Shown here: piece after piece, positions 3,071 to 57,329 of the stretch | Layout: every line of letters starts with the position of its first letter | Position numbering within the stretch: position 1 is the first letter of the stretch | Sequence record: NC_070963.1 | Strand: one strand, 5' to 3' | DNA length: 64,000 nucleotides | Program-made: the position numbers and the translations under genes | Notes under the pieces: generated by a model | Told to the model about the DNA's origin: nothing | Seen by the model: only the letters and a program-made list of their open reading frames with translations | Database searches by the model: none

Positions 3071-3985
3071 ATGGCGTCAGAGATTCGTGTAAATCAGATA
3101 CAAAACCGAAGTGGATTAAGCACCGTAACCTTCAGCGATACTGGTGTGGTTATTTCTGGTATTACAACGATTTCTGACTTAAGAACCAGTGGAACCACAG
3201 TAGTCGCAGCAGGAACTACCAGTGCTCCATCCATAAGTCCAACAGGCGACTCTAACACTGGTATTTTCTTCCCTGCTGCTGATACTGTAGCAATCGCAGA
3301 AGGTGGTGTTGAGGTTTTAAGAGTTGATAGTTCTAGTAACGTTGGTATAAACAGCACTTCACCAGCAAGAAAACTTGACGTTGTAGATAGTGGTGCTAGT
3401 GGTTCTGTTATAAGGTCTAGAGTCACTACAAATAATGGTGGATATCTAGCATATGAGGCACTAAACTCTTCTGGAACTTCTGTGTTTAGTGTGACACATA
3501 ATGGAAGAATAAACCTTTCAGAAAATATTGTATTTGCTTCTGGACAGGGGTTAGACTTCTCTGCGACTGCTAACAGTTCAGGCACAATGACCAGTGAGTT
3601 GTTGAGTGATTATGAGGAAGGAACTTGGACACCTACTTTTACCAACGGTGGAACCGGTGCTTATTCAAATAGAACAGGTAAATATACTAAAATAGGAAAC
3701 ACAGTTGTTGCACATGGATATCTGCAATTTAGTTCAGTAGGAACTGCATCTGGAACTGTTCAAATTTCTGGTTTTCCATTTCCATGTAATAACTATGGAT
3801 CTAGTTCTACAATTCATGGAAATTCTTGGAGTGTTGCTAGATCTAATTTAAATGGATTAATTTCACCATCAGTATCTTACATGGATTGTTATTATAATAC
3901 TGGTGGTACTGTTGCATCTATACAGCATAGCGATATAGGTGTTGGAAATTTTCTATTTACGATTGTATATCAAACATCATCATAA
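3071..3985 (+). CDS. tail fibre-like protein (paralogue of 9568-10584)
   Basis: PSISPTGDSNTGIFFP motif, GLDFSA..SELL.DYEEG.WTP motif; near-identical central DNA to the 9568 gene. Confidence 0.75.
   Translation: MASEIRVNQIQNRSGLSTVTFSDTGVVISGITTISDLRTSGTTVVAAGTTSAPSISPTGDSNTGIFFPAADTVAIAEGGVEVLRVDSSSNVGINSTSPARKLDVVDSGASGSVIRSRVTTNNGGYLAYEALNSSGTSVFSVTHNGRINLSENIVFASGQGLDFSATANSSGTMTSELLSDYEEGTWTPTFTNGGTGAYSNRTGKYTKIGNTVVAHGYLQFSSVGTASGTVQISGFPFPCNNYGSSSTIHGNSWSVARSNLNGLISPSVSYMDCYYNTGGTVASIQHSDIGVGNFLFTIVYQTSS
3342..3426 (+). repeat. 85 nt exact repeat, copy 1 (copy 2 at 9896-9980), within a longer near-identical block
   Basis: ttggtataaacagcacttcacc...ggtctagagtcac read identically at both sites. 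Confidence 0.85.
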
Positions 3986-43172: not shown

Positions 43173-44261
43173 ATGTCAGCATCTGTAACAAAAGCAGGAC
43201 CATATTACTCTTCTGGGTCTATTTCTTTTAGTTCCTTACGAACTAACTTTAAGGAATCTGATTCTGGGTCTATTAGTGCTTCGGAGTTGAGAAGAAATAC
43301 AACAACTACAAATACAAATCCAACTGTTCCAGATGCAACAGAAAATAGCAGTATTTCTACTGCCTCTAATTTAGCAATATCTCAATTTAGAAATTCAATC
43401 AAGTATTATTATATCACACAAACTGGAACTGATGTTAATTTTGATATTGATGCTCAATCTTGGAACAGTAATTTAAACAAAAACATCCGAAAGTGGATGT
43501 ATATAAATGGAACTTGTGGATCTAACTCAATATCTTCAACTGCCGTAGATTTTAACGCAACTGCATATAACTTAACTGTTGATGTTTCTGGTGGCATTTA
43601 TGGTGCTGCTGGTTCTGGAGGAACTGCTGCCACAATTAGTGGTGGTAGTGGAGGAACTGCTCTCTCTGTAAATTCTTCTGGGGGAAATAATATTGTCGTA
43701 TTTGTAAGAGACAGTGCAAATATCTATGGTGGTGGTGGAGGAGGAGAAAAAGGTGCTACAGGTGCTACTGGAAGTCCAGGAACTTGCACAGATTCTTATA
43801 CTGCATCACAGTGTGGTAGTTGTCCGGAGTGTCCATCACCTTATGTAAATGGTTCTTGCTGGGGTGGTGGAGAATGTGGAAGAAGACAAGTTTGTAACTG
43901 GTGGGGAAACTGTTGGTGGGAAGCAAGTCAATGGACTCAATATAGAACTTGCACCAGAACTTATGGAGTTTCTGGAGGAACTGGTGGTGCTGGTGGTGAT
44001 GGAGGCACTGGTAGAGGATACAATAATGCAGGGTCTCTAGCAGGTGCAGCAGGGGCAGCAGGAGGTTCTAACAATGGTTGTGGGTCTACGAATGGTGCTA
44101 CTGGAGAGACTGGTGGAAGCGGTGGAGATTGGGGTTCTAGTGGTGTAAATACTGCAAACAGTGGAAATGGAGGCCCTTCTGGAAGAGCAATTTCAGGGTC
44201 TAACTATTCTGTTTCTGGAACAATTAACTCATCAACAATTAAGGGATTATACCTACCATAA
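43173..44261 (+). CDS. Gly-rich virion structural protein with Cys/Trp-rich insert
   Basis: Collagen-like GAxG/GGxG runs; CGSCPECP...CWGGGECG...CNWWGNCWW block. Confidence 0.65.
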   Translation: MSASVTKAGPYYSSGSISFSSLRTNFKESDSGSISASELRRNTTTTNTNPTVPDATENSSISTASNLAISQFRNSIKYYYITQTGTDVNFDIDAQSWNSNLNKNIRKWMYINGTCGSNSISSTAVDFNATAYNLTVDVSGGIYGAAGSGGTAATISGGSGGTALSVNSSGGNNIVVFVRDSANIYGGGGGGEKGATGATGSPGTCTDSYTASQCGSCPECPSPYVNGSCWGGGECGRRQVCNWWGNCWWEASQWTQYRTCTRTYGVSGGTGGAGGDGGTGRGYNNAGSLAGAAGAAGGSNNGCGSTNGATGETGGSGGDWGSSGVNTANSGNGGPSGRAISGSNYSVSGTINSSTIKGLYLP

Positions 44262-44281: not shown

Positions 44282-44626
44282 TTGATTAAAATGTCTGAAA
44301 ATCAAGATTATCCATCATTAATTGAGCAAGGAAAAAACCTAGCAAAGTTTTCTTGGGATCTCATCAATTACATTCAAAAGAATCAAGATAAAGTATTGTT
44401 TGTTTCTGATGATGTTTATGAGGAAAGAATTAATACTTGTAAGGAATGTGAAAAGTATAACGAATTAGAAAATCGTTGTAAAGAATGTGGATGTTTTATT
44501 CCTGCAAAGGCAAAGATTATTCTTGATAGTTGTCCTTTGAATAAATGGAAAGAAGACAAAGAAAGTTGGGATAAGAAGTTTGAGGATATTGCAAAAAACC
44601 TTGACAAACCTCAAGAATCCCATTAG
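44282..44626 (+). CDS. small Cys-rich protein (DUF6171-like)
   Basis: R...C..C.K......RC..CGCF..AK......CP..KW pattern. Confidence 0.6.
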   Translation: MIKMSENQDYPSLIEQGKNLAKFSWDLINYIQKNQDKVLFVSDDVYEERINTCKECEKYNELENRCKECGCFIPAKAKIILDSCPLNKWKEDKESWDKKFEDIAKNLDKPQESH

Positions 44627-46351: not shown

Positions 46352-46949
46352 AAACTCTACTTGCTTCTGCAGTTATTCTTTTCACTCCAGCAGCATTTGC
46401 TCAAGAGGTTTATCCAATTAATGTGAATAAACTTTGTGCTGCCATTGTCGGTATTCCTTACGCTTCTGACAATTTTTCAGATGAAGAATGGGAAAAGTTT
46501 AAGACCTGTGTAGAAAATGTCAAAACATATCAAGATTAAATAATACACTATCTTAAAAATGAATATGTCTTATTACATATGGTTCATTATATTTGCAGTG
46601 GTGGCATACTTTATCGTAACTGATAATAGTGTTGCTGCTGCTTTTGATTATGTAATGAGACTCTTAAAATTAGAATATGAAAAGCGTAAATGGTGGTTGC
46701 TGAATAATCCAAGAAATCCCATCGTAAAATATCTGATTTGGAGACGCTCATACAAACTTGCCAAACAAATTGAAAATGAAATCCAAATGGAACGTCAATC
46801 CAGAATGTCTGACAACAATAGCGAGATTGCTGAGTGAATTGGAAGGAGTATCATATATTCTTGACTGTCTTGAAGATGAAGAAGCATCTGAGTATATTTC
46901 TAAATTAAAGAAAAAGTATTATAAAGAATATTTTCGTAGAAATAAATAA
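46348..46949 (+). other. three small overlapping hypothetical ORFs (46348-46539 secreted-like, 46559-46837 membrane, about 46776-46949)
   Basis: ORF track, tight packing. Confidence 0.5.
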
Positions 46950-46968
46950 CCATATATGGAGATTATAA

Positions 46969-47292
46969 ATGCTTTCTACACAATATAGATTGAAACTTGA
47001 AGGTATTTGTGAAAAGATTGCAAAGAGAGAAGAAGTATCATTAGAAGAAATGATCTGGGCGGAAAAACTTGCAAATGTAAATCCAACAGCAGCAAAGTTT
47101 CTTCGTCAGGCAAGAAGAAAGGCAGAGAATCCTAATATGCAAGAAGGTGATATGGATGACTTTCTCAATCAGTTGGATATTGGAAGTTTAGGGCACGAAA
47201 GAAGAGGTATAAGAGAATTTAATTCTCCAGATGAAATTGCAGAGTGGTTTAGCAGAGATAGAGATGGTGATGAATGGAGACGTAGAGACTGA
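46969..47292 (+). CDS. conserved cyanophage hypothetical
   Basis: MLSTQYRLKLE.IC..I; GGAG RBS and TAAATA upstream. Confidence 0.65.
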   Translation: MLSTQYRLKLEGICEKIAKREEVSLEEMIWAEKLANVNPTAAKFLRQARRKAENPNMQEGDMDDFLNQLDIGSLGHERRGIREFNSPDEIAEWFSRDRDGDEWRRRD

Positions 47293-47495
47293 TGAAATCA
47301 TTTCAAGAGTTTCTTTTTGAAGAAGAAAAGTCATCTAAAGCAACGGCAGAGTATCAGAACGAACCAAAGGGCAATGAGAAGTGCTCTAATTGCAATATGT
47401 GGAGACCGCCAAATGCTTGCACTGCAGTAAAAGGTAAGATTGCTGCTGATGGTTGGTGTAAGTGGCATCAATATAATAGGAAGAATCGTGATTAA
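47292..47495 (+). CDS. HiPIP-like 4Fe-4S protein with N-terminal capsid-targeting-like peptide
   Basis: YQNEPKGNEKCSNC...CTAVKGKIAADGWC: four Cys in HiPIP spacing; N-terminus MKSFQEFLFE. Confidence 0.75.
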   Translation: MKSFQEFLFEEEKSSKATAEYQNEPKGNEKCSNCNMWRPPNACTAVKGKIAADGWCKWHQYNRKNRD

Positions 47496-56810: not shown

Positions 56811-57329
56811 AACAAAAACCTATGAACTACCAAGAGTTTCTACAAACTCCACACACCTTTATGAATGATGTAGTTGAAATCATCACAATCAAAAAGAAAT
56901 GGGGTTTAGCACTTACAAGAGAAGAAAAAATGCTTCAAAGACACATTCGCATTCTTACCTTACGAAGTTCTTATGAGGCACAAAAATGAATAAACCTTAT
57001 TTGCTGATTGCTGGAGAAAATTTTTACCCTTCTAGGGATACTGGTGATTGGATTGGGTGTTTCTCTACCTATGAAGAAGCAAAGGCACAAGTAGAACCCA
57101 AAAAACCCAAAGGATATACAGTAAATGGATGGGAATGGGGTTGTGATTGGTATAAAATTGTAGACCTTCGTGAATGGACTGAATAATGATTAAAATGATT
57201 AAAACTCTACTCAAATTCTTATTCTCAAAAGAAATAGAAGTTGCTCCTGGTGTTTTTTGGTTGGGTGGAGTATTATATGAGAACCGAAACAAACCAACAA
57301 CACCACCACCTCTCAAATGGAAGAAGAGG

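Follow-up and report, generated by a model that had tools for sequence, protein, structure and literature searches.

A HiPIP-type protein with a T4-like candidate capsid-targeting sequence in the freshwater cyanophage S-SRM01

The window, that is, the whole stretch of 64 kb analysed here, corresponds to bases 1-64000 of Synechococcus phage S-SRM01 as identified by blastn (MW015081.1 / NC_070963.1; positions in the window are those of the record). S-SRM01 is a T4-like cyanomyovirus (Kyanoviridae) from a freshwater reservoir in Singapore; it has a genome of 240.8 kb with almost all genes on the + strand. The locus described here is a unit of two genes, a member of phrog_507 followed by the gene of a small HiPIP-type protein (Table 1). 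The TGA of the first gene overlaps the ATG of the second (TGATG, 47290-47294), and this stop/start overlap is kept in most related loci. Judged from its sequence, the HiPIP gene is translationally coupled to the phrog_507 gene in a conserved two-gene unit. Homologs of the phrog_507 gene are found in 461 cyanophage records, and since this late-looking gene is so widespread, the HiPIP gene behind it is apparently a lineage-specific addition. It is surrounded by small non-structural ORFs in an early-looking region that is distant from the head module. An intrinsic terminator 3' of the HiPIP gene found no support: the spacer of 111 nt folds no better than its shuffles (z -0.45), and the one terminator-like match overlaps the start of the next gene. 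Elsewhere in the window, at 44282-44626 (+), a Cys-rich protein of 114 aa is encoded that matches Pfam DUF6171 (E 5e-11); its gene is small and late-looking, with ATAAATA before it at 44261, lies near the adhesin-tip gene and has no known function.

Table 1 Features of the HiPIP locus, tagged genes and the prohead protease gene of S-SRM01.
Feature	Position	Strand	Remarks
Late-promoter-like motif AATAAATA	46941-46948	+	3' end 21 nt ahead of the start codon at 46969
Upstream gene, 107 aa, no known function	46969-47292	+	phrog_507 (E 2.6e-37); first gene of the two-gene unit
HiPIP-type protein, 67 aa (tagged gene)	47292-47495	+	QPX48026.1; ATG start; deposited as 'hypothetical protein'
Candidate capsid-targeting sequence, codons 1-10	47292-47321	+	MKSFQEFLFE; L-x-E protease motif at residues 8-10
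HiPIP core, residues 11-60	47322-47471	+	C31, C34, C43, C56; Y21, G54, W55
Cys codons	C31 47382-84; C34 47391-93; C43 47418-20; C56 47457-59	+
Short basic C-terminal tail, residues 61-67	47472-47492	+	lower confidence in the AlphaFold2 model
Tagged gene, 53 aa	81722	+
Tagged gene, 276 aa	82315	+	paralog of 83142
Tagged gene, 338 aa	83142	+	paralog of 82315
Tagged gene, 102 aa	126582	+	phrog_1742; in structural module
gp21-type prohead serine protease	135233-135883 (L009 22233-22883)		Peptidase_S77, E 7.9e-37; deposited as 'primosomal protein'
Tagged gene, 56 aa	138614	+	directly after gp23
Tagged gene, 59 aa	157606	+
Tagged gene, cytidyltransferase, 440 aa	165428	+
Tagged gene, 447 aa	176324	+

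The 67-aa ORF with four Cys in HiPIP spacing is present exactly as the original prediction had described it, and both the profile search and the structure prediction support the assignment. Pfam PF01355 (HIPIP) matched the ORF with 23.7 bits (E 6.2e-5, profile positions 15-63 of 66), which barely exceeds the gathering cutoff of 22. A phmmer search of the PDB sequences gave PioC of Rhodopseudomonas palustris (6xyv) with an E-value of 3.1e-10 over residues 12-59, and two more HiPIPs with weaker matches. The Cys spacing C-x2-C-x8-C-x12-C is identical in PioC and the phage protein, and the identity of the cores is 37%. An exhaustive HMMER search yielded 950 relatives at E<=0.001. In an alignment of 141 sequences Y21, C31 and C34 are invariant, and P25, P40, C43, V46, G48, G54, W55 and C56 are conserved to at least 90%. 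The AlphaFold2 model based on this alignment has a mean pLDDT of 86, with values of 89-95 for residues 11-60, whereas residues 1-10 form a separate helix (pLDDT ~67). When the model was compared with the PDB by Foldseek, ranks 1-16 were all taken by HiPIPs with PioC first, and the predicted structure superposes on PioC with a TM score of 0.79 (normalised to the target) and an rmsd of 1.4 Å over 49 columns. Based on the profile, the homology to PioC and the predicted fold, we assign the HiPIP fold and its ligand set, and a HiPIP fold with four Cys ligands is very probable for the 67-aa protein. A weak precomputed Pfam label, 'BAS4', on some of the homologs was disregarded as uninformative.

Zn binding is frequent among small proteins with four Cys, a basic internal protein can do without a cofactor, and the Pfam score is marginal with respect to its cutoff. 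This could mean that only the fold is derived from HiPIPs and that the protein carries no cluster but serves to pack DNA as a small basic protein that binds Zn or no metal at all, with Cys of structural function. However, not only the four ligand Cys but also Y21 and W55, which shield the cluster, and the sequence G54-W55-C56 are all conserved with bona fide HiPIPs, and both the Cys spacing and the core identity relate the protein to PioC. A cluster-less protein is therefore highly improbable to us.

PioC and the other small HiPIPs of PF01355 (6xyv, 1isu, 3h31) share with the S-SRM01 protein not only the Cys spacing but also a core of about 50 residues, the Tyr before the cluster and the G-W-C at the last ligand, and the predicted fold superposes on them at 1.1-2.3 Å. 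Unlike these proteins, the S-SRM01 protein has no twin-arginine signal and would hence not be periplasmic; furthermore, it has an N-terminal tag of 10 residues and a basic tail, and it is encoded by a cyanobacterial virus. HiPIPs are known from textbooks as electron carriers in the periplasm of purple and iron-oxidising bacteria, and cyanobacteria are, to our knowledge, not a group known to use them. The absence of a Tat signal peptide, which had been predicted, was borne out: the HiPIP core begins after only some 10-12 residues, which leaves no room for such a peptide, and there is no RR motif. The export of cellular HiPIPs by the Tat system, which had been taken as established, agrees with the relatives retrieved, among which those with a long N-terminal region mostly have a hydrophobic stretch after a twin-arginine motif. 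In HiPIPs of the phage type only 8-16 residues precede the core, and these proteins start with MKxF...[LIF]-x-E.

A word-index search gave 22 clusters of proteins with 66-91% identity to the S-SRM01 HiPIP, all without a signal peptide, and their contigs are fragments of freshwater T4-like cyanophages with genes for gp32, gp59, gp53, PhoH, Thy1, speD and baseplate proteins. The HiPIP is encoded on at least 91 IMG/VR contigs. Among phage isolates it is not a common gene, since no PHROGs family matches the ORF and tblastn against 50,697 deposited phage records retrieved S-SRM01 itself only. A scan of 185,579 species genomes with the protein gave a single match, on a contig of 8.4 kb (JBIPMW010000269.1, locus L216) that had been binned into a Crocinitomicaceae MAG from Lake Mendota. 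Besides the HiPIP gene, this contig has two other tagged ORFs, which start with MKTFREFLEEAY and MKSFQKFLEEAY; with three tagged ORFs in all it looks like phage DNA, and it is very likely a cyanophage fragment that was mis-binned into a bacterial MAG. Distant signal-less HiPIPs likewise start with MKxF...hydrophobic-x-E ahead of the core. One of the distant phage HiPIPs, that of locus L095, is encoded shortly after an ATAAATA and next to a gene with a similar start, and is found among genes for AhpC, CMD and a 2OG-Fe(II) oxygenase. Four signal-less HiPIPs (P0029, P0032, P0036, P0038) differ at the other end: they have longer C-terminal tails with a conserved extension past the last Cys (W-Y-E/A-G-G-A-Y/P-G-x-x-G-K).

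The N terminus of the S-SRM01 protein had been likened to the capsid-targeting sequence (CTS) of T4, and the comparison stands. As read from NC_000866, ipII and ipIII start with MKTYQEFIAEA and ipI starts with MKTFKEF; MKSFQEFLFE fits this type with an aromatic residue at position 4, Phe at position 7 and [LI]-x-E (L8-F9-E10) at the end. The CTS of T4, MKTYQEFIAE, undergoes a single cut by the prohead protease and is enough by itself to bring foreign proteins into the head. Residues 4 and 7 are reported as the main determinants of targeting, residues 8 and 10 as those of processing (PMC9026906). In the 44 distinct DNA versions of the HiPIP gene, K2, F4, F7, L8, E10, E11, E12 and K13 are invariant at the amino-acid level, and these include all four positions reported to be critical in T4 (F4, F7, L8 and E10). 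Positions 3, 5, 6 and 9 of the tag do change. Synonymous codons vary at the invariant positions, up to four different codons for L8, and invariance of the amino acids together with synonymous variation argues against a cause at the nucleotide level such as a ribosome-binding site or gene overlap. At the sites that are critical in T4, purifying selection evidently acts on the protein sequence of the tag. The predicted cut is followed by Glu in the S-SRM01 HiPIP, but by Ala or Ser in T4 IPII and IPIII and in many tagged proteins; cleavage could therefore occur elsewhere or be absent. A look-alike of the tag that is one residue shorter is present at the start (MNYQEFLQTPHTF) of a small ORF at 56822-56989 (+) of the window, and relatives of this ORF (MTYEEFLDMPTTF, MDYEEFLDMPTTF) are found directly upstream of the HiPIP gene in loci L041 and L053.

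The tag is not restricted to the HiPIP. In the whole S-SRM01 genome, ORFs of 35 codons or more have 5311 possible starts. When each of these was given a CTS-like score out of 10, a score of 8 or more was reached at nine ATG starts only, all of them on the + strand and all belonging to real genes (Table 1); no decoy ORF and no ORF on the minus strand scored above 7. Like the HiPIP matches, the tag is thus no product of chance. The nine genes share the start MK[STN]F-x-[EQ]-F, with Glu following at position 9 or 10. Apart from one pair of paralogs the encoded proteins are unrelated, they are mostly basic (pI 9-10.7), and all but the cytidyltransferase are annotated as hypothetical. The HiPIP and the eight other proteins are a candidate set of internal head proteins. 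Eight of the nine starts agree with the annotation, and the ninth is 21 nt upstream of the start that was deposited. In the latter case (157606-157785; L009 44606-44785) the deposited CDS begins at an internal Met at 157627, and the start 21 nt upstream gives MKTFQQFMEK with CTAAATA at -20; the CDS annotated from 157627 is probably too short.

A similar picture emerged from IMG/VR, which was searched with a back-translated pattern for M-K-[ST]-F-Q-E-F. Of the 83 occurrences analysed among the matches listed, 64 have the tag within 10 codons of an upstream in-frame stop, i.e. at the start of an ORF, and in 57 there is an [AC]TAAATA no more than 65 nt away. Downstream of the tag, 79 distinct sequences were found among these matches; they fall into at least 32 families that are unrelated at a blastp E-value of 1e-4. 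Many of the tagged proteins among the matches listed continue with [ILVM]-x-E-[AS] like T4 IPII and IPIII, and many are rich in Lys and Arg. Tagged genes can be clustered, as in locus L094, where three adjacent genes have tag-like starts, and in L216. The tagged contigs that were examined closely come from freshwater T4-like cyanophages or are phage-like. As far as sequences can tell, the tag is a module that is common to unrelated proteins.

The TAAATA motif before the upstream gene at 46969, which had been taken as a sign of late expression, is indeed there as part of AATAAATA. In 23 of 28 distinct metagenomic contexts of the HiPIP locus [AC]TAAATA is kept at -27/-28, with variable flanking bases. 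The S-SRM01 genome has 91 copies of ATAAATA on the + strand and 7 on the - strand, with copies 28-44 nt ahead of gp22, gp17, gp25 and the small gene that follows the portal gene. [AC]TAAATA is present between -65 and -8 in all eight tagged transcription units, as compared to 74 of 352 crude + strand genes (21%; binomial p 3.8e-6). The T4 late core TATAAAT is the motif that was used for cyanophages by Sullivan et al. (PMC3037559). Going by the motif, the HiPIP unit would be expressed late in infection.

A different function has to be considered at this point. The HiPIP could be the product of an auxiliary metabolic gene, a signal-less soluble electron carrier that stays unpackaged in the cytoplasm of the infected cyanobacterium, with an N-terminal peptide that is only a structural helix or a start favourable for translation. 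S-SRM01 does have other auxiliary metabolic genes for redox reactions and photosynthesis (ferredoxin, peroxiredoxin, psbA, hli), the small non-structural ORFs around the HiPIP gene would be fitting company, and the same holds for the AhpC, CMD and oxygenase genes next to the distant HiPIP of L095. However, the tag is absent from the ferredoxin, the peroxiredoxin, Dps and Hsp20 of S-SRM01. Moreover, a purely cytoplasmic role leaves unexplained why the tag is found on nine genes of S-SRM01 and in at least 32 unrelated families elsewhere, why the four T4-critical positions stay invariant under synonymous change, and why late-promoter-like motifs are found at all tagged genes. We therefore regard this explanation as unlikely. 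The comparison with the ferredoxin (petF) and plastocyanin (petE) of cyanophages is instructive in this connection: these are, like the HiPIP, small redox carriers borrowed from cellular electron transport, but the ferredoxin of S-SRM01 is untagged and the presumed place of action of the petF and petE carriers is the infected cell and not the particle.

S-SRM01 encodes a prohead serine protease of the gp21 type (Table 1), and its gene lies between the portal gene and gp22/gp23; gp20, gp22 and gp23 are annotated nearby. The system thus resembles that of T4 in having a gp21 protease, a gp22 scaffold and a tag on unrelated cargo within one genome. The likeness extends to the proteins: as in the T4 internal head proteins, M-K-[ST]-[FY]-[QK]-E-F is followed by [LI]-x-E, and the predicted mature part is basic. 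A late-promoter-like motif lies upstream. The putative cargo differs from that of T4, which is an orphan basic protein or an anti-restriction factor, in being a metalloprotein of a known cellular redox family.

That tagged proteins can occur in cyanophage virions is documented by a different protein. Sullivan et al. (2010) identified 41 proteins in purified virions of the cyanophage S-SM1 by mass spectrometry, among them a putative cytidylyltransferase (T4-GC190) with 25 peptide counts. This protein, SSM1_190, starts with MKKFSAFLNEAERS and is the only ORF in the S-SM1 genome that reaches the strict tag score; with so few tagged genes it is an anchor and not a statistic. A second virion protein of S-SM1, SSM1_192, starts with MLSFKELQEK and is a weaker case than SSM1_190. 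Orthologs of the cytidylyltransferase start with MKKFSAFLKEA (P-SSM4), VKSFGQFLTEA (S-SSM7), MKSLFQFLNEA (Bellamy) and MKNFHQFITEA (S-SRM01). The cytidylyltransferase is similar to the HiPIP in that it has the same kind of tag and belongs to a family of enzymes and not of structural proteins. It differs in being a cyanophage core gene with an unrelated fold and function, whereas the HiPIP is found only in S-SRM01 among cultured phages. In Synechococcus phage Bellamy the annotated start of gene 170 (L219 401-1636) omits 16 codons (48 nt); the tblastn match and the upstream ATG restore MKSLFQFLNEA, the CTS-like start of the T4-GC190 cytidylyltransferases. In S-SM1 (NC_015282, 146446-151332) the adjacent SSM1_188, 190, 191 and 192 are all present in the virion proteome. 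Their genes surround that of the cytidylyltransferase as a cluster for non-T4 virion proteins, which is located between mazG and gp61.

Altogether, the explanation towards which we lean is that a redox-active HiPIP became a packaged internal head protein in one lineage of T4-like cyanophages from fresh water. The protein would be synthesised late in infection and would acquire its [4Fe-4S] cluster in the cytoplasm, just as Tat substrates gain their cofactors in the cytoplasm before export. F4 and F7 would then recruit it into the gp22 scaffolding core of the prohead; this targeting by means of the N-terminal tag is probable. A gp21-type protease would trim the protein after L8-x-E10, and the basic holo-protein of about 57 aa (6.5 kDa, pI ~9) would stay among the packaged DNA until it is ejected with the DNA into the next host. 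For the ejection itself the arguments are about evenly balanced. T4 heads accept folded cargo fused to the CTS such as GFP and beta-galactosidase (PMC9026906), and the compact IPI* of T4 is thought to traverse the tail without unfolding, which makes a HiPIP of this size a plausible passenger.

Not every protein that enters the core stays in the head. In T4 the majority of the core proteins are broken down and lost from the head, which keeps only some of them. By analogy, the tag might bring the HiPIP into the prohead core only for assembly, after which it would be degraded or expelled with the scaffold, and the small acidic stretch EEE after the motif would fit such a role. The retained internal proteins of T4 are, however, described as basic, and so is the predicted mature form of the HiPIP, with a pI of 9.0-9.4 depending on the cut site. 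Furthermore, the predicted fold is compact and looks protease-resistant, with high model confidence, and the sole hydrophobic-x-E tripeptide of the core (at A17-T18-A19-E20) is presumably a weak site. A function in assembly only is thus quite improbable.

If the HiPIP is indeed packaged, its role in the capsid or in the host would most likely be one-electron transfer or redox buffering. Electrons could be transferred to or from the host or a co-packaged partner, or the packed DNA could be protected by redox reactions. It is tempting to speculate that a [4Fe-4S] HiPIP on packaged DNA is a sacrificial electron donor or sink within the capsid against photo-oxidative damage to the genome of a virus of sunlit water, or, once ejected, a ready-made redox effector in the first seconds of infection, but we consider such specific functions doubtful. 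One argument against a packaged HiPIP is that a few hundred copies of an electron carrier would have no obvious stoichiometric effect on the cell.

HiPIPs and the T4 CTS are each well known, and it is their combination that is new in the literature searched, where we found no report of a phage-encoded HiPIP, of a HiPIP combined with a T4 CTS or of a redox metalloprotein as internal head protein of a phage. The paper on S-SRM01 mentions neither the HiPIP nor virion proteomics, and the review of T4-like genomes by Petrov (2010) has no text on the CTS. Fe-S proteins have been reported in particles of giant viruses, so that Fe-S proteins in virions are not without precedent as a general idea. As far as we know, the tag of the T4 internal proteins has been studied almost only in coliphages. 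A signal-less viral HiPIP with a head-targeting peptide would be a different use of the HiPIP fold. If true, it would also mean that a tag of the T4 type takes cofactor proteins of cellular origin as cargo. Were the HiPIP confirmed in virions, redox chemistry within the capsid or at DNA entry would arise as a question.

Beyond the HiPIP, a start of the type MK[ST]F-x-[EQ]-F together with an upstream late-promoter-like motif offers a rule by which packaged, possibly injected orphan proteins may be predicted. Among the tagged proteins, one of ~148-181 aa encoded at position 3515 (+) of locus L154 starts with MKTFQEFIAEAK, which is the tag of T4 IPII and IPIII with Phe replacing Tyr at position 4. 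This protein has a stretch G-V-Y-T-S-T-N that is reminiscent of ADP-ribosyltransferases, and it is possibly an Alt-like packaged enzyme.
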